This document shows, one piece after another, positions 3 to 40,206 of a DNA stretch of 64,000 bases (position 1 is the stretch's first letter; every line of letters begins with the position of its first letter). Position numbers and translations under genes: made by a program. Under the pieces are notes generated by a model. That model ran no database searches. It was not told the origin of the DNA and worked only from the letters and a program-made list of their open reading frames with translations. The DNA is taken from positions 1 to 64,000 of IMG/VR virus record IMGVR_UViG_3300023278_002893. One strand, 5' to 3'.

Positions 3-224
3 GACCTGAAGATCAACGGCAACATCGCGCTGATGAATCTCGACGGGCTGAGCGGCATCACTTCTTCGCTCGGAGGAGACCTGCAGATCACGAACAACGC
101 CGTGCTGACGAATGTCGACGGGTTGGGCGGCATCACTTCGGTCGGAGGAGACCTGCGCATCAGGGATAATGGTGTCGATAAGATGGCGAAACTAAAGAAA
201 CTTATTCGAGAGGGGAAAAGATAG
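3..224 (+). CDS. C-terminal end of a receptor-L-domain/leucine-rich repeat protein (5' end outside the window)
   Basis: Frame is open from base 3: DLKINGNIALMNLDGLSGITSSLGG-DLQITNNAVLTNVDGLGGITSVGG-DLRIRDN, i.e. 24-25-aa repeats. Confidence 0.7.
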   Translation, partial: DLKINGNIALMNLDGLSGITSSLGGDLQITNNAVLTNVDGLGGITSVGGDLRIRDNGVDKMAKLKKLIREGKR

Positions 225-12416: not shown

Positions 12417-13058
12417 ATGGTAGGAAGATACAGCAACAACCTAAAAGAAAGATTTTGGAAGAAGGTAAGGAAAACCAGAGGTTGTTGGTACTGGGAGGGC
12501 TCCGGTACTGTACGCGTATCTAGAAACCAAAAGAACAGTAGGATTACTCCAAAAAGATTGGCATATAGATTGACCAAGGGGTATGTTTCAAACAACACAT
12601 ACCTAATTGCCACCTGCAAGAATACCGATTGTGTCAATCCCGACCACCAGGTACTACAAGCTAAAAGAAGCAGGCTCAGAAAGTGTGCCCATTGTGGGAG
12701 GCCTGTAACCAAGGGACTCTCTCAGATAAGCAGAAGCGAATCCGGCAGAGTCTTCTGCAACAGATCCTGCTCCACCAGTTACAACAACAAAGGTAAGCAA
12801 CGATTTAGGATAAGGGGCTGGGAAGAAATACGAAGCCGGGGAAGCACAAAAAGAAAATGGATAAGTGAGGGTCGTTCTCTTAGGTGTGAAGAATGCGGAT
12901 TCAACGGAACGGAAAAGCCTTGGTGTGTAGAGATAGACCACATAATACCCATGCACTTAGGCGGGCAAACACTTCCAGAAAATCTACAGCCCTTGTGTTT
13001 GAATTGTCATATGGATAAGACAGTCCAAGAACACAAAACAAGGGCGAGCGGCGTGTAG
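12417..13058 (+). CDS. HNH endonuclease with two HNH-type modules and a zinc ribbon
   Basis: RFWKKV...GCWYW...CKNTDCVNPDH; CAHCG...FCNRSC; CEECG...EIDHIIPMHLGG...NLQPLCLNCH. Confidence 0.88.
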   Translation: MVGRYSNNLKERFWKKVRKTRGCWYWEGSGTVRVSRNQKNSRITPKRLAYRLTKGYVSNNTYLIATCKNTDCVNPDHQVLQAKRSRLRKCAHCGRPVTKGLSQISRSESGRVFCNRSCSTSYNNKGKQRFRIRGWEEIRSRGSTKRKWISEGRSLRCEECGFNGTEKPWCVEIDHIIPMHLGGQTLPENLQPLCLNCHMDKTVQEHKTRASGV

Positions 13059-14998: not shown

Positions 14999-15160
14999 AT
15001 GCTAGAATCTCTCACCGACGAAGAGTTAATCATCTTCCTGAAGGTAAGAATGGGACAAGAAATAACGGACGCAGAGACACGTGTGTCTCTAGCGGCCATA
15101 GAAAGGGAGTGTCCAATGTTCTTCTACGACCAAATGATGTCGGAAGGACTTATAGATTAG
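14999..15160 (+). CDS. hypothetical protein, 53 aa
   Basis: AGGAG RBS; MLESLTDEELIIFLKVR...; the last base of its stop is tRNA-Lys nt 1. Confidence 0.55.
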   Translation: MLESLTDEELIIFLKVRMGQEITDAETRVSLAAIERECPMFFYDQMMSEGLID

Positions 15161-15236
15161 GGCCGTTAGCACAACCAGGCAGTGCAAGAGACTTTTAATC
15201 TCTAGGTTCCGGGTTCGAATCCCGGGCGGCTCACCA
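15160..15236 (+). tRNA. trnK: tRNA-Lys(TTT)
   Basis: GGGCCGT/GCGGCTC, loop CT-TTT-AA, CCA. Confidence 0.93.
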
Positions 15237-15617: not shown

Positions 15618-15707
15618 AGAGATGAAACCTATTACTTTCATACTATGTGTCGGTGTTCTGGCGTTGGTAATCTCCTCACCAATCATCTTCTCGGGGTGGT
15701 AAATTTC

Positions 15708-15962
15708 ATGAGGCGGATCAAATTTTATCTCGGCAAAATAAATCTCCTAGCCCACTTCATCTGGTGGAGGAAATGGAAACTCGTTCGAGACGAGTGGAAC
15801 ATGACCTATGAAGAACTGGAAGATGCCAAGAAGCGCCTTCCTGAAATAGAGCAGGAAGCAATCGAACGCCTCCTAAATCTCTTAGAGGAAACAGAATGTG
15901 ACGAAGGAGCAACGACCAAAACGGATACGTCAATTTTCCCACCGACAGCGAAGAATTTATAA
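15708..15962 (+). CDS. hypothetical protein
   Basis: ATG at 15708 (MRRIKFY). Confidence 0.5.
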   Translation: MRRIKFYLGKINLLAHFIWWRKWKLVRDEWNMTYEELEDAKKRLPEIEQEAIERLLNLLEETECDEGATTKTDTSIFPPTAKNL

Positions 15963-15979: not shown

Positions 15980-16288
15980 GTGTTCGTCTGCTTGGTAGTA
16001 GTGGAACCTGACGGTGAGTTCGACGACAGGTGGCCTGTCTGCTGTATCAATCCCATATTCGTTTCTTTGAGCGACGGGATAGTTGGTGACGATGTCATTC
16101 CTACTCCCCCCATGCCTGACTTTGATTCAGTGGAAAATATAACACAGATGGCCGATATGATGGCCGCGGAAAAGGCAGCCCATCCAGAAACGTTCCACTA
16201 TCCCAACGAAGGGGATGGTTGTATTCGATACCCTCAAGGTGTATCAAGTTGCTTAGGAGACTTAAATGTCACACATCAACAGACGTGA
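15980..16288 (+). CDS. hypothetical protein
   Basis: GGAGG RBS. Confidence 0.5.
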   Translation: MFVCLVVVEPDGEFDDRWPVCCINPIFVSLSDGIVGDDVIPTPPMPDFDSVENITQMADMMAAEKAAHPETFHYPNEGDGCIRYPQGVSSCLGDLNVTHQQT

Positions 16289-16481
16289 GTTCATAAAGAA
16301 TTCTGCTACCCTCGTGGGTGCTGTGGTATTAGCTCTAATAGTTCGGGTCTTTCCTGTACCCGTAACAACACCACCGCTAGAGTCTGGGACCTACGAAGCT
16401 ATTGCCGAGAGTCTCGTAACCCCAATACTACAGGAAATCGGAGAAGCATCCGTCATGCGTAAAATCGTGGCGGTAAGATAG
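16266..16481 (+). CDS. small protein with a twin-arginine (Tat)-like signal
   Basis: INRREFIK followed by a hydrophobic stretch. Confidence 0.6.
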   Translation: MSHINRREFIKNSATLVGAVVLALIVRVFPVPVTTPPLESGTYEAIAESLVTPILQEIGEASVMRKIVAVR

Positions 16482-16527
16482 GCAAAAAGGGAAATCAATC
16501 CCCAACCAGTACAGAAGGAAGAAGAAA

Positions 16528-17280
16528 TTGCAATATTGCAATTACGTAAGTCGAATCAATACCCTGTTCGTAGTTCTTTGCGTCATTTTCACTCTCAGCA
16601 TCGCAAGTTCCGTATCTGCTATCACGATTCTCGACGATTTCGAAGACGGGGACACCGTTGGATGGGAAACATCCTCCTATTTTTCGAGCCCGGGCGCAGT
16701 ATCTTTCGGTGTCACAGATGGAAGATATCACCTCACAACGAACGGCGTTTCTGGTGACGGCCCCTACAACTATATGGCGTCCATGTACACCGACTCCTTG
16801 GTACCGGGGCGTTATATTGATAGCTCCTTGTCCCTAGACGTGAATGTTTCGGCTCTCGGCGGGGTAGCGGGAGTGTTCGTGCGTAGCGCGAACGCGACTT
16901 CAGGCTACGGAATGATGTTCGATACCGAATCCAACGCCATGTTCATCAGCAGGAGCGACGGAGTTAGTACCGTTCGTCTCGAAACACTGAATCGGAGTTT
17001 TGACCAAGATACCAACTACTCACTCCGAGCAATGGCGACCGGTGACCGATTGGACTTCAGGATCTGGGAATCGAGTATGGCCGAACCTGGCGCGTGGGAC
17101 ATCACTGTCTTTGACTCTACATACGGCTCCGGTGGCTTCGGCGTGTTGGCATCCCCCGGATATGTCGCCGGCTCGATCGGCGCGTCTTTTGACAATGCGG
17201 TATTCTCTCCGGAACCTGGAACTCTTGTACTTTTGGCTGGAGGTCTTGTCGGACTCGCAGTGTTGGGTAGGCGTAGGTAA
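16528..17280 (+). CDS. PEP-CTERM sorting-domain surface protein
   Basis: N-terminal signal peptide; C-terminus SPEPGTLVLLAGGLVGLAVLGRRR. Confidence 0.88.
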   Translation: MQYCNYVSRINTLFVVLCVIFTLSIASSVSAITILDDFEDGDTVGWETSSYFSSPGAVSFGVTDGRYHLTTNGVSGDGPYNYMASMYTDSLVPGRYIDSSLSLDVNVSALGGVAGVFVRSANATSGYGMMFDTESNAMFISRSDGVSTVRLETLNRSFDQDTNYSLRAMATGDRLDFRIWESSMAEPGAWDITVFDSTYGSGGFGVLASPGYVAGSIGASFDNAVFSPEPGTLVLLAGGLVGLAVLGRRR

Positions 17281-17291
17281 CCTACTGAGAA

Positions 17292-17320
17292 GGGGGACTA
17301 TCGTCCCCCAGGAGTTTTTA
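17292..17320 (+). terminator. probable intrinsic terminator after the PEP-CTERM gene
   Basis: GGGGGAC-TATC-GTCCCCC followed by AGGAGTTTTT. Confidence 0.45.
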
Positions 17321-17348: not shown

Positions 17349-17498
17349 ATGACCCGTCAGACTAAGAGAACGACAGAATGGCTTACTTGTCTATGGTGTT
17401 ACGCCGTGTTCAAGGCACGCCCCGGGTTCGTCACACCAATCCATAAGAGAGACGGACAGCGGTGTCCTGGGAGCCATAAAGAAGGAGACGGCTGTTAA
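17349..17498 (+). CDS. small Cys/His zinc-finger-like protein, 49 aa
   Basis: AAGGAG RBS; CLWC...H.....CPGS. Confidence 0.5.
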   Translation: MTRQTKRTTEWLTCLWCYAVFKARPGFVTPIHKRDGQRCPGSHKEGDGC

Positions 17499-17807
17499 AT
17501 GATCAAGAAATGGTTTATCTGCTCATGGAAACACAGAGAACATCGATGTTACCCTAGAGATCCGAATGGGTGGTGGCACTGTATGAAATGTCACCCCTGC
17601 GATGAATGGCTGAATAAGTGGTTGGAAAAAATGAGGAAAAAAGAGGAGAAAACTATGGCTGAGAAAGAAACGAAAAAACCTAAACCCGATGTCACCGTGA
17701 GACCAATCGAAGGTTTGATGCTCGCCGAGGCACAGATCAGAAAGAAGAGTGATCTTCAGAAAAACATCGTCAAGGATACGGCGAATCAAGAGAACGAAGA
17801 GATATAA
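17499..17807 (+). CDS. hypothetical protein
   Basis: AAGGAG RBS; may really be two short ORFs. Confidence 0.5.
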   Translation: MIKKWFICSWKHREHRCYPRDPNGWWHCMKCHPCDEWLNKWLEKMRKKEEKTMAEKETKKPKPDVTVRPIEGLMLAEAQIRKKSDLQKNIVKDTANQENEEI

Positions 17808-17833: not shown

Positions 17834-17910
17834 ACCCCGGTAGCTCAGTGGGTTAGAGCATCAGGCTTATATCCTGACGGTCGTAGGTTCAAGTCCTACC
17901 CGGGGTACCA
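17834..17910 (+). tRNA. trnI: tRNA-Ile(TAT)
   Basis: ACCCCGG/CCGGGGT, stem TCAGG/CCTGA, loop CT-TAT-AT, A73, CCA. Confidence 0.93.
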
Positions 17911-18403: not shown

Positions 18404-19264
18404 ATGAGTAACATAAGGATCCTAAAGCAGGTGAGGGATGGTGGTATCATCCTTCAAGAACAATTCAAAGGGATGTTCTTCTCCGGAGGAGAACCCCACG
18501 TGGTAATCGAAGCTCCCGACAAGTTGGCGGGGGCTTCTGTCATTTTGGATGCTCGGGTAGGTTCCCCGGCAGATATGATGATGCTTCTCGCGGTAACCAA
18601 TGCCGTGAAGGAGTGTGATGCTAAAGAGATTTCTCTTCTTCTGCCCTACTTCCCGGGAGCGCGGCAAGACAGATCCGAATCTGGATTTGCTGTCACCTCC
18701 AAAATGTTCGCAGCAATTATCAATCTCCAAGGATACAAGGTTGTGGGGGTAGTAGATCCCCATTCTGTTGCAGCGATCGAAGACCTGGAACGATGTGTTC
18801 CGTTGTCTCCGATCCCACTGATCAAACAGTTCCTCCCCGAGGGGCTGGTTGGTTTGATTTGCCCCGACGAGGGGGCCATTCCGAGGACTGAGGCGCTTGC
18901 CAAAGAACTCGGAGGTGTGCATGTGGTGTATGCCCATAAGAAACGAGATCCAAGGACGGGTAAGCTTACCGGTTTCACCTTGGATCCTCTCCCCGAAGAA
19001 GGTAACTGGCTTCTCGCAGATGATATCTGTGATGCAGGCGGAACCTTCATGGGAACGGCAGGTCAGTACCTGGAAGATCCCAAAGGTACCGGGCCTCTCC
19101 ATCTATGGACAACGCACGGCATCTATTCCAGAGGACTGGAAGAACTCGCCGGTTATTTCGCAACGATAGGGTGCTCTGATTCTTTCCCGAGCGCCGTCAA
19201 TCCCCACCCACAACTCCAGGTGGTTTCCATTCTGGACAACCTTGATCTCCTAGGAGGTATCTAA
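18404..19264 (+). CDS. prs: PRPP-synthetase-like protein (probable Adps of NARP1)
   Basis: FSGGEPHV, LPYFPGARQDR, VDPHS, ICPDEGA, KKRD, LADDICDAGGTF. Confidence 0.92.
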   Translation: MSNIRILKQVRDGGIILQEQFKGMFFSGGEPHVVIEAPDKLAGASVILDARVGSPADMMMLLAVTNAVKECDAKEISLLLPYFPGARQDRSESGFAVTSKMFAAIINLQGYKVVGVVDPHSVAAIEDLERCVPLSPIPLIKQFLPEGLVGLICPDEGAIPRTEALAKELGGVHVVYAHKKRDPRTGKLTGFTLDPLPEEGNWLLADDICDAGGTFMGTAGQYLEDPKGTGPLHLWTTHGIYSRGLEELAGYFATIGCSDSFPSAVNPHPQLQVVSILDNLDLLGGI

Positions 19265-19266
19265 TC

Positions 19267-20754
19267 ATGTTCCAATACGCACCCGAATCGGCGTTCGACG
19301 GATACAAAGGCGACCATCGTCGTCAATACCCCGACATGACACAATATGTCAATTCCAACTGGACTGCCCGCGGGTCCAGAGTCCAAGGGCAAAGGGAGGT
19401 TGTTTCGTTCTCCCTTCAAGCATTCCTTCAGGAACGTATGATGGACGACTTTCAACGGCTGTTCTTCGATGTACCGCTGGAAAAGGTACTGAAGAGGCAC
19501 GCTCGTCGGATGAACGGTTATCTCGGTCCCAACGACATGGGGGTTCAGCACATCGCCGACCTCCACGATCTGGGCTACGTACCTCTCCAGTTTTCTGGAT
19601 TGGAGGAGGGCACCCTGTGTCCGCTGCGCGTACCCCAATTCACTGTGCAGAACACACTTCCAGAGTTCTTCTGGATGACCAATGCATATGAAACCTTGAC
19701 CTCTACCTCGGTTTGGCAGCCCTCGACCTCGGCAACCACTGCCTATCGGTTTCGGAAGCTGCTGAATCAGTATGGGGCATTCACGGGGACAGCCCCCGAA
19801 GGTATTGGCTACCAAGGCCACGACTTCAGTTTCCGGGGACTACCCGGCCTGGAGGCGGCGGCCGCATCTGCTGCTGGTCACCTCCTGTCCTTCATCGGAA
19901 CGGATACTGTCCCGGCACTGGATTGGATCGAGCAGTACTACTGGGGCGACGAGCCGGACGATTATGTCATCGGCCAGTCAGTTTTCGCGACGGAGCACTC
20001 TGTCATGTGCGCCGGCGGAAAAGTTGGAGAACTTCAGACTTTCGAACGTCTGCTGGGTCTCTACCCCACCGGCATCTTCTCGGTAGTGTCCGACACCTGG
20101 AACCTGTGGCACGTCCTCACGGACATCCTTCCCAAACTCAAAGACCAGATCATGGAGCGCGAGGGCAAGATGGTCATTCGCCCCGACTCGGGTAACCCTG
20201 CAGACATTCTCTGCGGTGATCCCGAGGCAGTACGAGGAACTCCCGAGAGCAAGGGCGTTGTTCAACTGCTGTGGGAGGTCTTTGGCGGAACGAAGAACAA
20301 GTACGGTTACAAGGAGCTGGATTCCCACATCGGTTGCATCTACGGGGACGCCATCACCTTCGAGCGTGCTACAGAGATCATGCAGAGGCTGGCAGCATCG
20401 GGATTTGCTTCCGGCAACGTGGTCTTCGGGGTCGGTTCCTACAGCTATCAGCACGTCACCCGGGACACCTATGGACATGCCATGAAGGCTACTTGGGCGC
20501 AGGTTGATGGTGAAGGTCGAGACCTGTTCAAGAAACCGATCACCGATGGTGGTGAGAAGTTCTCCGCGACCGGACGGCTGGCAGTTCATGCCTACGACGA
20601 CGGTGAGCTGTATGTAATCGAGAAGGCCACTCCGGAGGAAGAAGCGGCATCGCTTCTGGTGCCTCGGTGGAAAGACGGTGAGTTCCTGAGCCGTACCTCC
20701 ATCTCTCAGGTACGAGCCAAGCTCTGGAGCGGTCAGCACGAGACCTCACTGTAG
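19267..20754 (+). CDS. nadV: nicotinamide phosphoribosyltransferase-like protein (probable Namat of NARP1)
   Basis: DGYKGDH..QYP, HDFSFRG, ATEHSVMC, SVVSDTWN, VIRPDSG, IYGDAIT, FGVGSYSYQ. Confidence 0.95.
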   Translation: MFQYAPESAFDGYKGDHRRQYPDMTQYVNSNWTARGSRVQGQREVVSFSLQAFLQERMMDDFQRLFFDVPLEKVLKRHARRMNGYLGPNDMGVQHIADLHDLGYVPLQFSGLEEGTLCPLRVPQFTVQNTLPEFFWMTNAYETLTSTSVWQPSTSATTAYRFRKLLNQYGAFTGTAPEGIGYQGHDFSFRGLPGLEAAAASAAGHLLSFIGTDTVPALDWIEQYYWGDEPDDYVIGQSVFATEHSVMCAGGKVGELQTFERLLGLYPTGIFSVVSDTWNLWHVLTDILPKLKDQIMEREGKMVIRPDSGNPADILCGDPEAVRGTPESKGVVQLLWEVFGGTKNKYGYKELDSHIGCIYGDAITFERATEIMQRLAASGFASGNVVFGVGSYSYQHVTRDTYGHAMKATWAQVDGEGRDLFKKPITDGGEKFSATGRLAVHAYDDGELYVIEKATPEEEAASLLVPRWKDGEFLSRTSISQVRAKLWSGQHETSL

Positions 20755-23751: not shown

Positions 23752-24420
23752 ATGAGCAAAGGTTTAATCTACGTCATGGACATGGAGTCCTCTCTGAGTG
23801 ACGCGCTTGCACGGAGAGTGGTTGATATGGATCAGCACATGATTTACCGTAAATGGGACATGGCGATCGATCCCACACAGGAGGTGAGCGCTTACAAAGA
23901 TGTGCTCAAAGGAATTATCATCTCCGGGTCTGTAAAGAACATCAACAGTAAGAAAGTAGACCCACCACAACTTCCCGCTATCTTCTTCGAGTTGGGAGTT
24001 CCCATTCTGGGGATCTGCTACGGTCATCAGCTGCTGGGACATTTAGCCGGGCAAAAGATAATACGTTGCTGGGACGAATCCGATCTCGAGAAAAGGACTC
24101 CCGCCAATCGCAAGAAGGACAAGGGGGAACAGGGCCCGACCATGCTCACACTTACGGAAGATGGTCAGAAATCCAAGTTATTCGAAGGTTTGGCTAAATC
24201 TTTTCCCGTCTGGATGAAGCATAACTGGATGGTAGAGGCTCTTCCCACCCCCAACTGGAAACTAACTGCGTCTACAGGGAAGTGTGGAGTTGCTGCTATG
24301 GAAGTGGGTAACATCTATTCCGTTCAGTTCCATCCAGAACCTTTTAACTCCCTGTTTGGAAAGATTATTTTACATAACTTCATGCAGAACATTTGTGGAG
24401 TAGAGACTCCTTACTTCTAA
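23752..24420 (+). CDS. stand-alone class I glutamine amidotransferase (GMP-synthase GATase-like)
   Basis: GIIISG, PILGICYGHQ, SVQFHPE (Cys-His-Glu triad intact). Confidence 0.9.
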   Translation: MSKGLIYVMDMESSLSDALARRVVDMDQHMIYRKWDMAIDPTQEVSAYKDVLKGIIISGSVKNINSKKVDPPQLPAIFFELGVPILGICYGHQLLGHLAGQKIIRCWDESDLEKRTPANRKKDKGEQGPTMLTLTEDGQKSKLFEGLAKSFPVWMKHNWMVEALPTPNWKLTASTGKCGVAAMEVGNIYSVQFHPEPFNSLFGKIILHNFMQNICGVETPYF

Positions 24421-26733: not shown

Positions 26734-29700
26734 TTGAAGAATTTCGCTACGATCTTGAAGGCCATTACTCAAGATCAACTTCACCGGTTCAACAACCGCA
26801 TGCGCGCAAGTGGAAATACTCTTAATTTGAACGTAGAAATACGCGAAGAGAGTTTGAACATCTGTGTGGATTTCCGCACGCAAGACGAAGTAGGTACTCT
26901 GATCATTCCGCAACTTCGAAAGAACGAGTTTGGCAATTATGTCATAGGAGATCGAGTCGATCGAGCGATGTGCCCTTTCATGGTGGTCATGGACGGCAAC
27001 CCGCAACACATCAGCTACGAGAAGATGATTCTCGCAATGCTGAGCATGAACATGGAGGATCTCTTCCCCGAGCAGGGAAAGAGGAACCAAATTGGCAAGA
27101 TCCTTTGGGCGTTCTATCAAAAGAGAGGACGTCTCACGCTGGGTCAGTGCCAGAAGTTCCTCAACCAACGACTGTTCAATGCTCTGCCCCTGAGTGGAAC
27201 CTCCATGCAGGACTGGGCGATGAACCACCGCGTAATGATCTTCGATCCAATCTTCGACACTCTGAATCCCCCGGAGAAATTGGCATACCAGAGGCGCAAG
27301 AATGAATTGCTCCACCCCTGGTCCTCCATCGGAATATCCGAGGGTGCCGCCGCTACGCGGAACTACATACTCCAGAAGGATCTGAGAAACATCACTGCGT
27401 TTGGTAACAGGCACCATAACCCAATCCGAAATCTGTATTCTACCCTAGGAATGAAGGGCCCAGAAGCACCCTTGGTGATCTCCGAGGCTGCCGCGCGGTT
27501 GGAAGATCAAGGAATCGTGCGGGGTGGTTGGAACTGGATGACCGTGTTCCTGGATCTTCCCGAGACCTTCGAGGATCAAATCCTTGTTTCTGGTCGGCAT
27601 GCAGGTAAGACGGTGACCTACGAGAGAACCTTCACCGTGTTCGGTGAAGAGTCAGTAAATGTTGGAGATAACATCCTCAAGGGGAGAGTAATCGGAACCA
27701 ACGAGGACGAGAGCTCCATATATTTCGACATTGATTGCGAGCGTGCGGAAGTAATCGAGTGTAAGAACGGTAATGTGCCCTTCGACGGCCAGGATCAGCC
27801 AGTACGTATTGTTGTTCTCCGAGTCGTGTATACTTTCAAAGAGGGTTTCAAGATTACAAATCAGCACGGGAACAAGGGTATCGTAAAGGTCCTGCCTGAC
27901 CTCGGCACCGTTCAAGATCCAGTTCGTGGTGAAGTACCGATCGACGTGATCGTATCTGCCAAGTCCGTACAGAAGCGCAAGAACTTCGGTCAGATTCTCG
28001 AAGCGCTTGCCACTCGGGTCACCGGGCCGAAGAAGCGAATGGCTGTTCCCGACGATCTTCGTATCGAAGTAGCGCAGATCGAAAAGAAACTGGTCTCTGC
28101 TGGGTACCAAAAAGAAGGTACCTGCAAGGTCATCACGCCTTGGGGAGAATTCGATTCAATCTGTGGTTGGGTTCACTGGGGAGTCACCAAGACTCCTGAG
28201 GAACAACTCTGGCAGGGAAGGGATGTAAAGGCGACCAACCAACGGGGTCTTCGCATCCGAGGCAACAAGGTATCTCCCATCGAATTGAAAGCAATGACCA
28301 CCCTCTTCGGGCCCCGCTCGCAAGTGGTAAAGGAAGTGCTCTCACATCGACAAGGCCAGGACGAGGTCAGGGAGCTTCTGGACATCGTACGGGGAATGTC
28401 AGGTCTTTACCGAGACAACCTTCCCACGATCGATCCGGCCACTTTCGTATACAAACCGTCGGGTATGGGAACCTTCCATGACCAGGAAGCTCTCGTAGGA
28501 ACGGTGGCGGACGAAGAAATGTTCCCGGTCGGATGCTATATCCAACTCCCCTTCCGACTTCTGGTATCCATTCCGGATGACAGGAGTAAGGGGATACAAG
28601 AAGGTATCGCAGGTGAGAATGCCTACGAGCGATTGGGTACGGGGACTCGATACTTTGAGTTCGATCGCCTGATGGTTCCTTCTGCTGCTCTGCGACAACC
28701 GTGGAGGCACGCAACGGGAAAGCTCGGTCTGGCAGACATCGCCACACAGTTGAATCAGATACTGGAAGGTATTGATCGACTGGCACTTGGTGAGATTAAG
28801 GAGGCACAGCTCTCCACTCTAATCTTCCGCTACCTGCACCACATCGGACGTTCCCTCTCCACGAAGAACGGTAAGATCAGCACCTATGCAATGTCAACTC
28901 GCTACCCCTGGTCTTCTAAAGCCACTGCAATTCTCGGCTGCGGCCTGGAGACAAACTGGGTGGAGATCCACAAGGACATGGCACGAGACCTCAAGGTCGA
29001 GACCGGTGATTATGTCATGGTAGAACGTTTCCCGTGTTTGGGATTCATGTCAACGCGTATCCAGCGAGTGAAGGTGACCGACGATCCAGAGGCAAAGTAT
29101 GTCATCCGGGTCAGCGGCAATAGCCTGGGTTCAATGAACCTGGACTTCGATGGCGATGTTATTTATCTGATGAGCTTCCACACAGAGGGTGCCAAAGCGG
29201 AGTTGGAGCACAACTTCCACAACCCACACCCGAAGGTCAAGGAAGTCATCGACCGTCTGAACAACAAGAAGCAGCCAATGACCCGGACCATGACCCTCCA
29301 GGAAATGGAGATCATGTCCTTCGATCCAATGAGCCCAGAAGAGCACGCCGAGTTGAACGCCACATCCCTTGCTGTAAAACTCTGGACAGGGCCGACGATC
29401 GCACTTTGCTACAGCATGATGCGAATCGTGGAGGGAAATATCCCCTACGAAGACCGTGAAGCGCACATCAACATCGAGGTCTTCCTTGATAAGGTGGGTA
29501 ACTCTGTCTTCTCCCAGAAGCACGGAACGAAGAGCCTCAGAGAAGAGTGTGTGGAAGCGGTGTGTCTTGCCAAGCCGGAGGCACTGGTAGAATTGGGCTT
29601 CCCTGTAAGGGAGAGCGCCCAGCTCTGCAACATCATCCGTTCCTATGCCTCGAAGTTGGGTGTTCGAACCGACGAGGAACTTCTGGCACATTATAAACGC

Positions 29701-29898
29701 CACGTGGAAGAAGGAAAAGCAACCATCGTTAGTGCTATTGTGCGGCGCTTCCACAAGACCTACTTTGCAACCCGATCCAATCTCCACCCGCTTGATCTTT
29801 TGGAGCACCTGGAGCAAGAACCACGAGATCTCGTATCCTACCTGGTACAACAAACACTGGAGGGAGGAGATCGCGATAAGGAACTTAAGGTCGTATAG
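26734..29898 (+). CDS. single-chain beta-beta' fusion two-barrel DNA-directed RNA polymerase
   Basis: Beta-like motifs FGNYVIGDRVDRA, TFEDQILVS, KITNQHGNKG, IDVIV...RKNFGQILEA; beta'-like motifs PSAALRQP, ERFPCL, NLDFDGD; TTG start with AGGAG RBS. Confidence 0.9.
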   Translation: MKNFATILKAITQDQLHRFNNRMRASGNTLNLNVEIREESLNICVDFRTQDEVGTLIIPQLRKNEFGNYVIGDRVDRAMCPFMVVMDGNPQHISYEKMILAMLSMNMEDLFPEQGKRNQIGKILWAFYQKRGRLTLGQCQKFLNQRLFNALPLSGTSMQDWAMNHRVMIFDPIFDTLNPPEKLAYQRRKNELLHPWSSIGISEGAAATRNYILQKDLRNITAFGNRHHNPIRNLYSTLGMKGPEAPLVISEAAARLEDQGIVRGGWNWMTVFLDLPETFEDQILVSGRHAGKTVTYERTFTVFGEESVNVGDNILKGRVIGTNEDESSIYFDIDCERAEVIECKNGNVPFDGQDQPVRIVVLRVVYTFKEGFKITNQHGNKGIVKVLPDLGTVQDPVRGEVPIDVIVSAKSVQKRKNFGQILEALATRVTGPKKRMAVPDDLRIEVAQIEKKLVSAGYQKEGTCKVITPWGEFDSICGWVHWGVTKTPEEQLWQGRDVKATNQRGLRIRGNKVSPIELKAMTTLFGPRSQVVKEVLSHRQGQDEVRELLDIVRGMSGLYRDNLPTIDPATFVYKPSGMGTFHDQEALVGTVADEEMFPVGCYIQLPFRLLVSIPDDRSKGIQEGIAGENAYERLGTGTRYFEFDRLMVPSAALRQPWRHATGKLGLADIATQLNQILEGIDRLALGEIKEAQLSTLIFRYLHHIGRSLSTKNGKISTYAMSTRYPWSSKATAILGCGLETNWVEIHKDMARDLKVETGDYVMVERFPCLGFMSTRIQRVKVTDDPEAKYVIRVSGNSLGSMNLDFDGDVIYLMSFHTEGAKAELEHNFHNPHPKVKEVIDRLNNKKQPMTRTMTLQEMEIMSFDPMSPEEHAELNATSLAVKLWTGPTIALCYSMMRIVEGNIPYEDREAHINIEVFLDKVGNSVFSQKHGTKSLREECVEAVCLAKPEALVELGFPVRESAQLCNIIRSYASKLGVRTDEELLAHYKRHVEEGKATIVSAIVRRFHKTYFATRSNLHPLDLLEHLEQEPRDLVSYLVQQTLEGGDRDKELKVV

Positions 29899-33584: not shown

Positions 33585-34697
33585 ATGAACTTTGATATCA
33601 ATCCCCACCCCAAGCTGATCAACGACCACCAGACGATCCGACTCCCTAGAAAGTTGAGAAAAGAAATAGGAGTGTTGGTGGGTCAGTTCATGCAGATCAG
33701 CGGTAAGGAAACCTTAGTCTTGGAAATCGGGAAGGACCTCGATGATTTCGAGACCAGTGCTTATGTCAGTGAGTCTAACTTTAGGAAGATTGAGGGACAA
33801 CAGTTAGAGTTCAAGATACTTGACGTAACATTAGGCTGTGATCCGGAGTTTTTCATTATGTGGGGGAAGCGTCTGATATCTGCGACTACTTATCTCCCAT
33901 TCAATGGTGCAATCGGTGCTGATGGTAATTTAGGAGAGCTTAGGCCTATGTATGCCCGTCACGAAAATGACGTGGTAGCTAACCTCCAAACGCTAATCAC
34001 CCAAGTACCAACTCGTATGAAAAGAGGCTACGGTGTGTCCGAAGGGTATCCCAAAGACGGTTCCCTCTTCGACCTTCAAGCCCACTCCTATTACTATGGA
34101 CTCGCAGCTGGGTTCCATGTGCATATGGGAATACCTCCCGAAATTCTAAACACCCGTAAATCTTTCAACCGGATAGCAATGAACCATCTGGTGAAATGCT
34201 TCGATTGGTTCGTATCTGTACCTTTAGTTCCTCTCGACGAAACTCCAGGCAGAAGACTGGGAGAGACTACCTACGGACAAGCGGGAGATTACCGCACAAC
34301 CAATTCGACCCTAGAATATAGAACTCCGGGAGGATTCTATCTCAGAACACCCACACTAGCTCGGGGTATGATGGGGTTATGTCTCATGGTAGCGGAGAAT
34401 GTAGTTAGTAGGATGAAGATCGCCAGTAGGAACTTCACAAGTCTGGACAAACTAACTCCTAATGACATGCAAGAGATCATGCCTGTTCCAAAAGTAAGTA
34501 AGGTTAAAGGAACCCTGGGAGCGCGAAGCCCGCTCGCAGCGGAGGGTTGCCTGGATGAAATACAGGAAAGCTTGAAGAAATTCCCCAACTACGATAAACA
34601 TCGGCGTTCAGTAGATGATTTTTTCAGCGTAGTGAGGTCAGGTCAAATACCAGTTTCCGACTTAATCCCTAATTGGAAGGTTAATGATGCCCAATAG
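33585..34697 (+). CDS. COOH-NH2 ligase type 2 (phiEco32-like) with an extra N-terminal domain
   Basis: LGCDPEF, GADG..ELRP, GFHVHMG, RR....YGQAGDYR, LEYRTPG. Confidence 0.85.
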   Translation: MNFDINPHPKLINDHQTIRLPRKLRKEIGVLVGQFMQISGKETLVLEIGKDLDDFETSAYVSESNFRKIEGQQLEFKILDVTLGCDPEFFIMWGKRLISATTYLPFNGAIGADGNLGELRPMYARHENDVVANLQTLITQVPTRMKRGYGVSEGYPKDGSLFDLQAHSYYYGLAAGFHVHMGIPPEILNTRKSFNRIAMNHLVKCFDWFVSVPLVPLDETPGRRLGETTYGQAGDYRTTNSTLEYRTPGGFYLRTPTLARGMMGLCLMVAENVVSRMKIASRNFTSLDKLTPNDMQEIMPVPKVSKVKGTLGARSPLAAEGCLDEIQESLKKFPNYDKHRRSVDDFFSVVRSGQIPVSDLIPNWKVNDAQ

Positions 34698-36384
34698 CAC
34701 CGGACAGCGCTCGATCAGCTTTCAACAGAGGTCGAATAGACCTCCGCTGACAAGCGAAGAGTGCAGCTATCTTCTCGAACTTCTGCCGAAGATTTTGAAA
34801 GTCGGGACAGAATTCGAAACTAATCTTCCAGAAGCAGGCGCCGCGCTCGAGGTGAAAAGTGGCATAAGGTGCGTACATTCAGTTTCGCCAAGAAACTGCG
34901 TGGAGGATTGTACCAACGTAGAAAGCTGTTTGGTGGAAAGGCACCCTACATTTTGTAAGACCCGCAGTTCGGGACAATTCCTAGGTGAAAAAACCACGTG
35001 TCCGGCAGGAAACGCCGATGACATCGACGCTTGTAGAGCATGCGACAAGTGGTTACTGGATTGTCGTAAACAGAAGTGTGCCTCTTACACCCCCTTCTGC
35101 TCAGTCTGCCCGAACTTTTCAGTAGCAGGAGCTTCCGTCGTCGACGCAGACATTCGACAAGATGCGGAAAGTATTCGTCAAGAAGTAAAGAAATTACTCA
35201 GGCCGACCGAACACGTAGGAATCGTTGGTAAGTCTGGAGCACTGAGTGTGATCAAGGACGGTTCCCTACTCGGTGGCGGGATCGAAGTACCCACCGTAGG
35301 TAGAAGGGTACATTGGCAGAGCTTTTACAAGATGTGTGAGGGAATTCTTGAACCCATCATAAAACGTGGTGGATTTGTCGATGAAAGAACAGGTCAGCAT
35401 TTCCATGTACTGTCCGGTTACTTCGATAAAGGCACAACCCACGCGATCAATGATTTGGAAGTGCCCCTACCAGAGATCGTTTTGGCCAACCTTCACCAGC
35501 TACATCGAAGATACGAAGCCGCGATGTTCTGGATGATGAGTTGTGGAAATAGGATGGAACACCTCACAAGGTGGTCAAGGTTCCGGCAATCCATATACCA
35601 ATACAGCGCACTGCGCAGTCGAATGAGTACCGTGCAACAGGAATTGGCAGAAAAGATAGTATGTATGGGCGGTACCAACCAAAATGGTAAGTACGCTTCT
35701 GTTGCATATCACTTCTGCCGATTTGACGTCGCGGGGGACGTTAGTACTCTGCACTTCGAGAATCGTATTGCGGATGGATGTCTTTCCCCAGCGGTAATCA
35801 CTGCGTGGGCAATGATGTGCTATGCTCTTGTCCTCAAGGCGGTTCGACTTTCCCAATACGGAATCATGGAAGTTGGAGATAGTGAATACAACGCGGCAGC
35901 GAAAGAAGCCTCCTCCCACCTAATCGATGGAGAAAGACGAAGTTGGGACGGCAGCCGACACGCCGATACTTCAGGCATTGGACCATCGATTCCCTTCCTC
36001 CAAAGATCTTCAAGAGAGCTAATCCAACTTCTCAAACCGGAGATACACAACTTAGGGCCGGCGTTCCATATCCTAATGGAGCTGGCAGAGAAGCCCTGCT
36101 CGATCCGTCTTGCCAACGGAGACTCTTGGGACGAGATTGAATCCGAACTTTACGGACCTTATAAGCATGAAGAATCTCCATTTACCGGAAACAACGTGGA
36201 TGAGGTGCGGGAACTCATCGACCTGGCAACGATCATAGAGTGTGAGGATGTTAACGCGTGGATAGGAGAGGTCGCTGGCCATCTAGGTCAAGAGACCGAA
36301 GTCACCGAAGAAACGGTACAAAGTCTACTCGCTTCTGGGCGATATAGATGGAGCCCGGCGATCGGCTCGCTCATTACTGTTTAG
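34684..36384 (+). CDS. amidoligase (glutamate-cysteine-ligase/GS-fold, Amidoligase_2-like) with a Cys-rich insert
   Basis: VGTEFE, IKDGSL..GGIEVPT, TGQHFHV, TLHFENR. Confidence 0.75.
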   Translation: MMPNSTGQRSISFQQRSNRPPLTSEECSYLLELLPKILKVGTEFETNLPEAGAALEVKSGIRCVHSVSPRNCVEDCTNVESCLVERHPTFCKTRSSGQFLGEKTTCPAGNADDIDACRACDKWLLDCRKQKCASYTPFCSVCPNFSVAGASVVDADIRQDAESIRQEVKKLLRPTEHVGIVGKSGALSVIKDGSLLGGGIEVPTVGRRVHWQSFYKMCEGILEPIIKRGGFVDERTGQHFHVLSGYFDKGTTHAINDLEVPLPEIVLANLHQLHRRYEAAMFWMMSCGNRMEHLTRWSRFRQSIYQYSALRSRMSTVQQELAEKIVCMGGTNQNGKYASVAYHFCRFDVAGDVSTLHFENRIADGCLSPAVITAWAMMCYALVLKAVRLSQYGIMEVGDSEYNAAAKEASSHLIDGERRSWDGSRHADTSGIGPSIPFLQRSSRELIQLLKPEIHNLGPAFHILMELAEKPCSIRLANGDSWDEIESELYGPYKHEESPFTGNNVDEVRELIDLATIIECEDVNAWIGEVAGHLGQETEVTEETVQSLLASGRYRWSPAIGSLITV

Positions 36385-36404
36385 ATAGGAGGTCGTAGGT
36401 TAGA

Positions 36405-37229
36405 ATGTGTGGAATTGCAACAATCTCTATTGGGCGAGGCAGGCGCGGGAGAATTCCCTATAATAAGCTCCAAGGCCTTACCCAAAAGATCCTGGTTGAA
36501 CTGTCCGATCGAGGACAAGATGCATCAGGAATAGCGGTAGTCGGTGACGACCACTGCTTCGTATTCAAGAAACCGCTGAGGCCGGATAGATTGGTGGTTA
36601 GACCAAGATTTAGGGAAATCCTGGAAAAAATCGGGCCGGAAACAAATTTCATTATGTTGCACTCACGGGCAGCATCGGTAGGAGGTAACGAAGACAACTT
36701 CAACAATCACCCCATCGTAGCAGACCCGGTCATTGGTATCCACAACGGTACTCTCTACAACACTGAGAAACTACGCAAAAAGTTCAGTGATAGATTTTCG
36801 ACGGCGGGGAATGTAGATTCCGAGATCCTCTTCCGGATGTTCAACATGTATCTAGAAGAAGGACTAACTCCCAAACAAGCCCTGTGCAAGGTCACCGAAC
36901 AACTGTCGGGTGCTTTTACTGGGGCAGCGTTGGATCTTCGACACACCCATCGAATGTTGATGTTCAAGTTCCAACGTGATTTGGCGGTATTGCAGCTTAG
37001 TCACTACGACATACTCGTCGCGGTATCAAAACCGTATCACTACGATCGGGCGAGGGATACGATGGGACTGTCCGTGAAGGACAAGCTTTCGTATCCTAAG
37101 GAAGCAACTGCATTTTCGATTGATCTAAATGACGGGCCGGTCACAGAGCAATCAGACACTTTCCCCATTCCAGTAAAGAAAGAAGAATACTGGAAAGATG
37201 AATATAAACAGTGGGCATACTTCGGATAA
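36405..37229 (+). CDS. class II glutamine amidotransferase
   Basis: N-terminal MCG, RGQDASG, HSRAA..G....NNHP, GIHNG, NVDSE. Confidence 0.92.
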   Translation: MCGIATISIGRGRRGRIPYNKLQGLTQKILVELSDRGQDASGIAVVGDDHCFVFKKPLRPDRLVVRPRFREILEKIGPETNFIMLHSRAASVGGNEDNFNNHPIVADPVIGIHNGTLYNTEKLRKKFSDRFSTAGNVDSEILFRMFNMYLEEGLTPKQALCKVTEQLSGAFTGAALDLRHTHRMLMFKFQRDLAVLQLSHYDILVAVSKPYHYDRARDTMGLSVKDKLSYPKEATAFSIDLNDGPVTEQSDTFPIPVKKEEYWKDEYKQWAYFG

Positions 37230-37248
37230 GACAGGAGAGAAGTAAAAA

Positions 37249-38919
37249 ATGTGCGGAATAGTTGGTGTAATTCAGTATGAAAGTGCGGTAGATCGAGCCC
37301 TTCGCCAGAAGGTGCTGAAAATTCTTTTCTCCGAAACAATGATGCAGACTGAATCCCGAGGTAAAGACGCCACAGGTGTGTACCAAGTCCACAAAAACGG
37401 TGACTGGCTCATGACTAAAAAGGGAGTCAGAGTCACCGATTGGATACCTGCAATGCGGTCGGACTCCGGAAACGAAGATCCAATCGACTTCGAAGATATC
37501 GTGGGGAGCTGGCTCGAACATCCCAAAGATTTAGCCGCTGTCGTAGGACACTGCCGCGCGGCTACTGTGGGATCCAGAGGAAAAGACAACAACGACAATC
37601 ACCCCTTCGCGGTTCAGTTGGACGAGGATAACGCCATTTTAGGTATCCATAACGGTACCTTGACCAACCACGAGATCATCTTCGATCGCCTACCTGATCT
37701 TCTTCCTCGACATGGGAAGGTGGATAGCGAGTCTCTATTCCATTTCCTATACCATCTAACTAATGGGGGAACCGAACCGATCGACGGTGACATGTTGAAA
37801 TACATGGGAGAACGTGTAGAGGGCGCCTATGCGGTTATTACGATGAACACCCGATTTCCAGAACAGGTGGTAACGTTCCGTAAAGATCGGCCGATGGAAT
37901 TCTTCATGGTCGCGCCGCTTAATTGCCTCGTCATTACTTCTGAGAAAAAGTTCTTCGAAGCGGCATTGGAAAAGTACAACTTCATCCGCCAAATGCTGCC
38001 AGAGTATAAAGAACTTCCCGCCCTGAGAAGTTGCCACAGGGGACTCATGGACCGAGAGTTTCGAATCTTCGATACAAGTCTTCCTTGGCCCGAAGGACAT
38101 CACCCCACTCATGGAGATTTCGATAAGATCTCAGACGGAAAGGGGGATATGACAAAAATCAGCTCTCCCATTATAGACGACTGGAAGAGCCCGGGAAAAA
38201 CTTCCAAGATAACCCCATCCAACACGCGGAAAATAACGCCCGCGTCCAACACTTCCGTGAAAACTACTAAAGCGAATCCAGTAGTCACTTCCGCAACTAA
38301 CGCCCGGCAGGCCTCGGAGCAAGTGGACACGGTTATAGTAGAGGCGATAATTAAAGTGCCCATCGGTATGGATGACGCCGCTGCGAAGGGGATCGAGCAC
38401 GTAAAAGGACTGGGGCTCCTAGTTCAGTACGATACCATGAACGAACTGGCGAAGTCAATTGGTATAAAGGAAAAGGAACTTGAGCAGCTGAGCGGGCTGG
38501 AACTGGCCAACAAACTGGCATCCATTCACTTTAGCATCGGGCACGCAGCCGCACGACTGTCTGCTCAAAAAGAAGTTAGTGACATACGTTCCAAAGCAAG
38601 TGATAACACCAAACTTCTGGGAAGAGTTGCGGAAAAGCAAAGGAAGGCGGAAATCCATATCTGGGAACATCGCCAGCTGGTGACCATCCTTCTTGCGTTG
38701 GCGCAGGGTAATTTCAAGCTGGACGCCAGTAATGTAAAGATTTCGTTAGCCGCGTTTCCCCAACTGGCGGACGAAAAGAAACAATCCATCCTGAAATCAG
38801 CAAAGAATATATTGGAATGTCAGGAAACCAAACTACTTATCAAAAAGCTTCTGCAGCGCTTCAATGATGTCGCACAGGCTAATGCTAAGAAAATCCAGGA
38901 GTCTAAGGGGACTCCCTAG
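37249..38919 (+). CDS. class II glutamine amidotransferase with a long C-terminal helical extension
   Basis: MCG, RGKDATG, GHCRAAT.G....DNHPF, GIHNG, KVDSE. Confidence 0.92.
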   Translation: MCGIVGVIQYESAVDRALRQKVLKILFSETMMQTESRGKDATGVYQVHKNGDWLMTKKGVRVTDWIPAMRSDSGNEDPIDFEDIVGSWLEHPKDLAAVVGHCRAATVGSRGKDNNDNHPFAVQLDEDNAILGIHNGTLTNHEIIFDRLPDLLPRHGKVDSESLFHFLYHLTNGGTEPIDGDMLKYMGERVEGAYAVITMNTRFPEQVVTFRKDRPMEFFMVAPLNCLVITSEKKFFEAALEKYNFIRQMLPEYKELPALRSCHRGLMDREFRIFDTSLPWPEGHHPTHGDFDKISDGKGDMTKISSPIIDDWKSPGKTSKITPSNTRKITPASNTSVKTTKANPVVTSATNARQASEQVDTVIVEAIIKVPIGMDDAAAKGIEHVKGLGLLVQYDTMNELAKSIGIKEKELEQLSGLELANKLASIHFSIGHAAARLSAQKEVSDIRSKASDNTKLLGRVAEKQRKAEIHIWEHRQLVTILLALAQGNFKLDASNVKISLAAFPQLADEKKQSILKSAKNILECQETKLLIKKLLQRFNDVAQANAKKIQESKGTP

Positions 38920-38937
38920 GGTCGAGGAAACCAAGCA

Positions 38938-40206
38938 ATGTCCAATAAAGTGCAGCTTCGACTCATGTCCTCCTCGAAGATGTCAAATGCGGGAGAAGGG
39001 GACATTATCAGATTCCCCAAGGCGGCGAGGCAGAATTTTGGCTTCTCCAACAGCAGGGTAATGATAGGTAAAGGCCCCTACGAGATAGCTCTCAAAGTAA
39101 AGAAAGCCTACTCGGAAGATGTACGCCGGCTCGCTGTCATGATCAAAAATGTGAAGATCTCCGAAGTGGATGCCCAGTGTGTAGGGTTCGTGCACAGCAA
39201 CGTACGGAAGAGAATCGTCGCGAAGCGGGGCGGTCAAGAGGATATCTGGATTACTGAGGGGATCGGCGACATTACCGTCGGCGCAGATCCCGAGTTTGGA
39301 TTGATTGACAGCGGTGGAATGTTGGTGCGCGGTAACAATATCGTATCAAAGGTAGGTAAATTCGGAAGTGATGGTCCGAGCGTAGAAGTTCGGCCCACTC
39401 CCAGTACTAACCACCTGGAAGTGGTGGGAAGCATCTCGGACATCATGGAAAATCCGCCTGGGCGAGCCGATGATTACAAATGGACGGGGGGTGCTACTTT
39501 CAGAGACACCGATAGGGTCTATTGGTTCGGCGGACATGTTCATCTCGGGAGACCCACTCAAATTGATGCGAATGAGGCGTATCCTATCTACAAAAGAATC
39601 GCAACCGCACTTGATGGGTTATTAGCCCTGCCAATGGTGCGCTTCGATACCCCCAATCCCTGGGAACGACGAAACGGATGCAAATACGATTACGGTAAAG
39701 CCGGGGACATACGGGCAGACTATCCAGAACAAAATCGATTCGAGTACCGGGTACTTAGCGGACTGTGGGTAGTACATCCCACATTAGCTACTATAGCAAT
39801 CGGTGCCGCCAAGTGTATTGTGGAAACCGCATACGGAAGGATTGCGGAAAAAGGATTTGATCCAATATGGGCGTCACAACCTATCTCTCGGGGAGGTATG
39901 TTGAAAAGCTTTGGACTGAAGGGAGTTCGGGAGATTCAAGCGGTAGTAAATCATGCGGATCCAAGGAGAATCACCCAAGACCATTTAGACACTTGGGAAA
40001 GAAACATTCGTAATTTGGACCGGTTCAATAAGTACAGGGCGGAGATCGAGGCGATGGTTGAACTGTCAAAGGAAAACCCAGAAAACATCGTCAGCGGGAT
40101 GGACCTAAACGTTAAAAGAAATTGGCAAGAGAGACGCACGTTGCTCCCTCGGGCCAGCAAGAAACTCAGAAAGGCGCTTGACGTCGTCGAGGAGAAAAGA
40201 AAATGA
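38938..40206 (+). CDS. COOH-NH2 ligase type 2 with an extra N-terminal domain
   Basis: VGADPEF, GSDG..VEVRP, GGHVHLG, RR....YGKAGDIR, FEYRVLS. Confidence 0.87.
   Translation: MSNKVQLRLMSSSKMSNAGEGDIIRFPKAARQNFGFSNSRVMIGKGPYEIALKVKKAYSEDVRRLAVMIKNVKISEVDAQCVGFVHSNVRKRIVAKRGGQEDIWITEGIGDITVGADPEFGLIDSGGMLVRGNNIVSKVGKFGSDGPSVEVRPTPSTNHLEVVGSISDIMENPPGRADDYKWTGGATFRDTDRVYWFGGHVHLGRPTQIDANEAYPIYKRIATALDGLLALPMVRFDTPNPWERRNGCKYDYGKAGDIRADYPEQNRFEYRVLSGLWVVHPTLATIAIGAAKCIVETAYGRIAEKGFDPIWASQPISRGGMLKSFGLKGVREIQAVVNHADPRRITQDHLDTWERNIRNLDRFNKYRAEIEAMVELSKENPENIVSGMDLNVKRNWQERRTLLPRASKKLRKALDVVEEKRK

Follow-up and report, generated by a model that had tools for sequence, protein, structure and literature searches.

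The jumbo phage G000 encodes a 250-aa protein (P0001) that joins a predicted signal peptide and a lectin-like body to a C-terminal PEP-CTERM tail. To our knowledge, such a tail is an address label processed solely by bacterial exosortase. The explanation that we favour, and consider reasonably probable, is that a probably lytic jumbo phage carries this lectin and PEP-CTERM gene as an accessory gene ('moron'), whose product would be sorted by the host exosortase, bind glycans and remodel the cell surface. Export, exosortase processing, ligand, benefit and host are the parts of this explanation that we infer.

The gene occupies positions 16528-17280 (+) of the window, which is the first 64 kb (64,000 nucleotides) of the G000 record; coordinates refer to the window unless G000 or another contig is named. 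The frame is open over 250 codons, and TTG is its first start codon. The following features of the gene were identified:

16516..16519 (+), Shine-Dalgarno-like AGGA, 8 nt 5' of the TTG start, found by reading the sequence
16528..16620 (+), TTG start and predicted Sec-type signal peptide, residues 1-31, from inspection, the AF2 helix and the homologue alignment
16621..17205 (+), CBM66-like concanavalin-type beta-sandwich, putative carbohydrate-binding module, residues 32-226, from AF2 and from structure and profile matches
17209..17277 (+), PEP-CTERM sorting tail, residues 228-250, from TIGR02595 and PF07589 scores
17292..17319 (+), intrinsic-terminator-like hairpin and T-run, 12 nt 3' of the stop codon

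An earlier note on this DNA had proposed a signal peptide, and this reading was borne out. By inspection, residues 1-31 comprise a basic n-region followed by a hydrophobic core and a V-S-A site, and the AF2 model places a helix at residues 3-28, within the signal peptide. An equivalent hydrophobic N-terminus was present in all members of the family alignment (41/41 rows). The terminator that had also been ascribed to the gene was recovered as a 7-bp hairpin at 17292-17309 with six G-C pairs, followed by the T-run; the 45-nt stretch has a folding energy of -19.5 kcal/mol (z -2.9). A search for sigma-70-type promoters 5' of the gene found none; the phage has an RNA polymerase-like protein of its own, so that other promoter types may apply. 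Reading the phage genes required no alternative genetic code.

The tail corresponds closely to the PEP-TM-RRR arrangement described in the earlier note. Residues 228-250, the C-terminal extremity of P0001, consist of PEP, 17 hydrophobic or small residues and RRR, with the stop codon following immediately. The PEP-CTERM HMM, which had been named as a check, scored above its cut-off: P0001 reached 18.4 bits with TIGR02595 against a curated cut-off of 16, although the Pfam model PF07589 gave 20.1 bits (E 6.9e-4), narrowly below its gathering score of 20.7. When all six frames of the complete phage were scanned with TIGR02595, the match fell exactly at 17209-17277 (23.5 bits, E 4.6e-5), and the same model found no match at E ≤ 0.1 in 14 control genomes. 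PF07589 matched 27 of the 41 aligned homologues (E ≤ 0.01), and the P-E-P motif was present in 37-41 of the 41 family members and in each of the three proteins of the phage clade described below. Judged from its sequence, P0001 is a genuine PEP-CTERM protein by the NCBIfam criterion.

No exosortase was detected with TIGR02602 or PF09721, either in the window, as the earlier note had stated, or in the entire 297,725-bp phage record.

The body of the protein had been described as Ser/Thr/Gly-rich and beta-sandwich-like. Serine (13.2% vs 7.4% genome-wide) and glycine (11.6% vs 7.7%) are indeed enriched and a beta-sandwich was modelled, but threonine is ordinary (7.2% vs 6.4%), and that part of the description did not stand. 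In the AF2 model, residues 32-226 form an all-beta sandwich with a mean pLDDT of 91.2. The body superposed on the CBM66 of the Bacillus subtilis levanase with a Z-score of 22.0 and an rmsd of 1.8 Å over 159 of 165 residues, and the Foldseek search suggested in the earlier note recovered the same module (E 1e-9). By sequence, the profile of the P0001 family matched the levanase CBM66 chains with an E-value of 4.4e-7. In the Atlas, the structural match to the body was a PF06439 cluster (TM 0.70/0.75). PF06439 itself was not matched by the P0001 sequence; the only Pfam match to the body was CBM_4_9 (E 0.1, under its cut-off), and neither Pfam nor NCBIfam assigns a name to the body of this family. 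By structure and profile, the modelled body is a CBM66-like carbohydrate-binding module and a putative lectin.

An exhaustive protein search with P0001 yielded 408 relatives at E ≤ 1e-3. Many of them are about 250 aa long and combine a signal peptide, the same domain and PEP-CTERM, while in others the body is joined to dockerin-like tails or repeated within giant proteins. Carrier genomes were sought with a 10-row sub-alignment. The named ones belong mostly to Planctomycetota and Verrucomicrobiota, with a few Gammaproteobacteria and one Armatimonadota, and the Atlas results were concordant. Exosortase matches above cut-off were found in all five bacterial carrier genomes tested (5/5). P0001 is about 27-33% identical to its best bacterial homologues.

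G000 itself is represented by an IMG/VR virus record rated 100% complete. Its large terminase gene (G000 194455-196299, minus strand) gave a Terminase_6C match of 27 bits, above cut-off, and its product shares 29-31% identity with annotated terminases from phages of Bacillus and Microcystis. The genome also encodes a family-A DNA polymerase, a DnaB helicase and a Lon-like protease, and its giant ORFs, of up to 4,554 aa, share a minus-strand block with the terminase. A terminase search retrieved 41 related viral contigs from IMG/VR at 47-100% identity; the helicase as query retrieved no close viral relatives. PHROGs recognised none of seven large minus-strand ORFs as structural (0/7), and no tyrosine integrase was found in G000. 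We regard G000 as a real tailed jumbo phage, which is probably lytic.

A second record of the same phage, G006 (IMGVR_UViG_3300023278_003531, 196,567 bp), has a terminase 100% identical to that of G000 and is labelled 'provirus'. Two shared landmarks with the same offset indicate that it corresponds to about 101.1-297.7 kb of G000. The missing third is the part rich in tRNA and metabolic genes, which may have been trimmed as 'host', and the provirus label may be an artefact. LRR-repeat genes devoid of a PEP-CTERM tail occur at window 3-224 (+) and at G000 251161-251769 (+); the former is cut by the contig end, suggesting an assembly break in a repeat, and the 'linear' ends may thus not be physical.

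Several other genes of the window are of note in their own right. The tRNA island at 1116-22268 holds 14 tRNA genes among small ORFs and an HNH endonuclease gene (12417-13058); for the tRNA at 1116-1192, the call gave an anticodon of four bases (ttca). An NAD-salvage pair, consisting of a ribose-phosphate pyrophosphokinase-like gene and a nicotinamide phosphoribosyltransferase gene, is located at 18404-20754 (+), and these are the most G+C-rich genes in the vicinity (GC3 at the 76th and 99th percentiles). A 1,054-aa protein encoded at 26734-29898 (+) matches RNA polymerase Rpb2 domain 6 and Rpb1 domain 2 and resembles a single-chain fused beta/beta' phage RNA polymerase. Amide-bond-forming enzymes are encoded at 33585-41327 (+), namely two COOH-NH2 ligase-like proteins, a glutamine amidotransferase/asparagine-synthase-like protein and a RimK-like glutaminyl transferase; together with a class-I GATase at 23752-24420, they may form a peptide or small-molecule modification pathway.

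The surroundings of the PEP-CTERM gene were compared with those in G007, a complete relative of G000 (295,848 bp) with direct terminal repeats, whose tRNA island is collinear with window 10-26 kb. Two conserved anchor genes enclose a variable slot, which measures 1.5 kb in G000 vs 0.3 kb in G007. Besides the PEP-CTERM gene, the following features define the slot and its flanks:

15160..15236 (+), tRNA-Lys, by tRNA call, in the tRNA island around the slot
15645..15962 (+), conserved anchor gene bounding the slot on the left, 61% identical in amino acids to L096 7482-7691 of G007
16266..16481 (+), 71-aa ORF with a predicted twin-arginine (Tat) signal, part of the same inserted cassette, TIGR01409 23.9 bits vs a cut-off of 16.7
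17349..17498 (+), 49-aa Cys-rich ORF, final gene of the slot, with no family match and no counterpart found in G007
17499..17807 (+), conserved anchor gene bounding the slot on the right, 45% identical in amino acids to L096 8056-8187 of G007
17834..17910 (+), tRNA-Ile (anticodon tat), by tRNA call, in the tRNA island, matching the collinear tRNA position of G007

In G000, the slot contains a 102-aa ORF, the 71-aa ORF, the PEP-CTERM gene with its terminator and the 49-aa ORF. In G007, the family profile found no member of the lectin family and TIGR02595 found no PEP-CTERM match. The GC-content of the PEP-CTERM gene is 52.7%, the 90th percentile of the phage's genes, and in GC, GC3 and codon usage alike the gene falls inside the range of the phage itself. 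Given the flanks collinear with G007 and the phage-like composition, the PEP-CTERM gene is best described as a dispensable cassette embedded in phage DNA, and not as a misassembly. The PEP-CTERM function is likewise dispensable, since a complete relative has no PEP-CTERM gene at all. The earlier note had called the protein phage-encoded, with a chimeric contig as the finding that would overturn this; the contig carries a terminase and both flanks of the gene are collinear with a complete related phage, so the claim holds. The 71-aa Tat-signal ORF lies directly 5' of the PEP-CTERM gene, and both may be co-transcribed. In the collinear tRNA island of G007, upstream of the slot, a 61-aa ORF (L096 5626-5811) bears a lipoprotein-like signal (…LAVSGC…); its product would be a further small exported protein of this island.

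The nearest homologues of P0001 are P0002, at 48% identity, and P0003, a fragment with 62-65% identity. In the family tree, the three proteins group in a clade of their own, which has 100% support and a long stem. All 14 positions conserved in the family, among them the PEP motif, are intact in P0001 and P0002, and P0003 keeps those that fall within its fragment. P0003 is located on contig L001, where three other genes match G000 263-266 kb at 33-53% aa identity. As read from these sequences, a related phage carries the predicted lectin and PEP-CTERM gene in a different neighbourhood. The separate clade, the intact conserved residues and PEP motif, the scores above the TIGR02595 cut-off and the copy on L001 together indicate that the lectin gene is retained by selection. 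Additional family members were not found in IMG/VR contigs (queries P0001 and sub-alignment A2), in 50,697 GenBank phage records (tblastn of P0001) or in 14 related viral records (family profile), each of these searches being of limited sensitivity.

The lectin is not the only tagged protein of the phage. P0156, a second PEP-CTERM protein of 79 aa, is encoded in the 263-266 kb module at G000 264770-265009 (+), equivalent to L031 1348-1584. It consists of a signal peptide, about 30 residues and a VPEPS/hydrophobic/Lys-rich tail, and scored 21.1 bits with TIGR02595. Its homologue P0157 (48%) keeps both ends and differs in the middle. P0157 is encoded on L102, a 1,075-bp contig (Logan ERR14940455), directly downstream of an LRR protein fragment (L102 3-533) that has a PEP-CTERM tail of 17.9 bits. 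L102 is 72-80% identical at the nucleotide level to two separate loci of G000 (251.3 kb and 264.8 kb), and no PEP-CTERM tail was found on G000's own LRR copies; L102 probably derives from a related phage whose LRR protein gained such a tail. The PEP-CTERM tag is thus found on three unrelated cargos in the lineage, and all tagged ORFs (6/6) score above the TIGR02595 cut-off. A conserved module adjoins PEP-CTERM genes in both G000 (263184-265971) and L001 (333-2215); its products are a protein of 189 aa whose C-terminal part has membrane helices, one of 284 aa that matched no family, and a macro-domain protein (PF01661, 24.5 bits).

A host exosortase is probably what the phage uses to place P0001 on or around infected cells, a reading of the earlier note that the analysis supports in part. 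This dependence is strengthened by the second PEP-CTERM gene in the same phage, by the conserved residues and PEP motif kept across a phage-specific clade, and by the exosortases in each of the five family-carrying bacterial genomes tested. An exosortase-positive diderm host, as the earlier note had suggested, is reasonable but unproven. Our best guess is a bacterium of the PVC group (Planctomycetota-Verrucomicrobiota-Chlamydiota); the host may alternatively belong to exosortase-bearing Cyanobacteria or Proteobacteria. When a 20-kb phage segment was searched against 401 Planctomycetota genomes for spacer-like or prophage matches, thymidylate synthase alone matched. The identity of ThyA by phylum gives no host signal, with best values of 66% for Planctomycetota vs 65% for Verrucomicrobiota. 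The phage encodes a thymidylate synthase and dihydrofolate reductase pair at G000 201654-202984 (-). The distribution of the P0001 family was considered as a host pointer and dropped, since the family is rare and patchy in sampled PVC genomes (4/151 and 3/151 Planctomycetota/Verrucomicrobiota genomes at E ≤ 1e-15, seed genomes counted). The IMG sample of G007 (3300022719) is among the Namib salt-pan mat metagenomes, in which Planctomycetota account for 3.4-11.8% (bioRxiv 10.1101/2022.02.18.481119). The largest viral cluster of these mats was linked to Planctomycetes (bioRxiv 10.1101/2022.02.18.481119); no connection between that cluster and the G000 clade was found.

Under the favoured explanation, P0001 would be exported through Sec by means of its signal peptide, and the C-terminal PEP-CTERM helix would hold it in the cytoplasmic membrane. 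An exosortase would then cleave it at the PEP motif; that of the host is invoked because the phage has none. The enzyme would deliver the protein to the cell surface or the exopolysaccharide matrix, where the CBM66-like module would bind a glycan. The benefit to the phage is the weakest step of this mechanism. We favour masking or remodelling of the surface polysaccharide of the infected cell, which could cause superinfection exclusion or keep progeny off infected cells and debris; altered aggregation or an altered matrix would be an alternative benefit. The position of the gene in a plus-strand block of tRNA, NAD-salvage and RNA polymerase genes, away from the terminase block, fits a role during infection and not in the virion.

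Alternatively, the tail might act as a C-terminal membrane anchor alone. The lectin would then stay tethered on the periplasmic side, uncleaved by any exosortase, and might bind cell-wall precursors or polysaccharide as it is being made. The lack of an exosortase in the phage and the PF07589 score marginally under threshold agree with such an anchor, and a hydrophobic helix with RRR is a stop-transfer anchor by itself. However, P-E-P, needless for a mere anchor, is kept in 3/3 phage-clade proteins and 37-41/41 family members, and the same tripartite tail occurs on three unrelated cargos of the lineage, all passing TIGR02595; we consider the simple anchor unlikely. That the gene is a passenger acquired from the host, with no role for the phage, seems to us distinctly unlikely. 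Its place in a variable slot of the tRNA island, its absence from the complete relative G007 and its GC-content of 52.7% (90th percentile of the phage genes) are what a passenger might display, but its nearest bacterial homologues are only about 27-33% identical, compared with 48-65% for those of the phage lineage, which form their own clade on a long stem. Moreover, codon usage is unremarkable, the conserved residues are all intact, and the gene is retained on the related contig L001 despite a different neighbourhood.

A virion component, in which the carbohydrate-binding module would serve adsorption in the manner of the lectin-fold domains of tail proteins, is very improbable, even though the fold of P0001 is frequent in phage tail and receptor-binding proteins. 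P0001 has a predicted cleavable signal peptide and a membrane-anchoring sorting tail, is 250 aa long with no tail-attachment domain, and has its sequence matches among bacterial PEP-CTERM proteins and in no GenBank phage; its gene, in the plus-strand tRNA and metabolic region, is far from the minus-strand block of terminase and giant ORFs. The collinearity of both flanks with an independent complete relative bearing terminal repeats, the phage terminase and replication genes on the contig, the gene composition fitting the phage, and the homologue P0003 adjoining phage genes on another assembly (L001) leave scarcely any room for an artefact, be it a chimeric contig or a bacterial contig taken for a virus; the 'provirus' label of G006 is the observation in its favour. 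Sorting of P0001 by the host exosortase remains the explanation that we prefer.

A broader proposal can be put forward tentatively, with a likelihood that we rate a little short of even: this jumbo-phage lineage may systematically exploit the host exosortase, having placed the tail on no fewer than three unrelated cargos (the CBM66-like lectin, the mini-protein of about 80 aa and the LRR protein), and may thereby rebuild the surface or matrix of the infected cell. If true, viral use of exosortase sorting would be without precedent, and the cargos would offer a natural minimal set for studying exosortase function. The evidence for exosortase sorting comes almost entirely from comparative genomics, and little is known of its chemistry or destination. 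With cargo but no enzyme of its own, a virus has to use that of the host, and the 79-aa P0156, which is close to a signal peptide and a tail only, would provide compact natural substrates for tests of cleavage and targeting. The borrowing of host sorting by phages, seen with lipoproteins and sortase substrates, would be extended to a third pathway. The proposal further hints that exopolysaccharide or aggregation is manipulated in the communities of mats or flocs. It also offers a clue to the host, a diderm with an exosortase, for this clade of ~300-kb phages, to which at least 41 IMG/VR contigs are related.

PEP-CTERM/exosortase (EpsH, Xrt) sorting was reportedly described by Haft et al. in 2006 and 2012 in exopolysaccharide-producing Gram-negative bacteria. 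The floc protein PepA of Zoogloea is an example of a PEP-CTERM system (Gao et al. 2018, as cited in PMC12642866). P0001 resembles the substrates of the bacterial system in its predicted signal peptide, its succession of PEP, hydrophobic helix and Arg cluster, and its score above the TIGR02595 cut-off, and its sequence relatives are bacterial PEP-CTERM proteins from exosortase-bearing genomes. In contrast to classic PEP-CTERM genes, which are chromosomal and co-occur with the sorting enzyme, its gene resides in a virus with no exosortase.

The body of P0001 covers nearly the whole of the CBM66 module of the B. subtilis levanase SacC (PDB 4azz, 4b1l, 4b1m), which has the DUF1080/PF06439 fold. 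Unlike the SacC module, with which it shares only 19% identity, it stands alone, followed by a sorting tail, and is not an appendage of a glycoside hydrolase. CBM66 is specific for fructan, a specificity that is not transferable to P0001.

Phage morons that alter the host surface include Llp of T5 and Bor and Lom of lambda, and SasX is a prophage-borne LPXTG protein anchored by the host sortase. The P0001 gene resembles these: it is small and accessory, occupies a variable slot and has a terminator of its own, and its product is predicted to be exported and to need host sorting. It differs in that its pathway would be exosortase, and not lipoprotein sorting or sortase A, and in that its carrier is a probably lytic jumbo phage and not a temperate one. 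A PEP-CTERM domain on a mobile or viral element is also annotated in HOG10 of the virus-like IME1 elements of Dehalococcoides (bioRxiv 10.64898/2026.09.15.751708), the sole mention of such a domain on a virus-like element found in the literature searched. IME1 is another type of element in another host, and the paper on it describes no lectin body and never mentions exosortase (bioRxiv 10.64898/2026.09.15.751708). A search for exosortase together with phage-encoded returned no paper. By analogy, the nearest functional precedent would be SasX or a similar sortase substrate encoded by a prophage. Neither the label nor the fold is unusual in itself; what is new is the carriage by a virus of PEP-CTERM cargo in the absence of the enzyme, and on several cargos.
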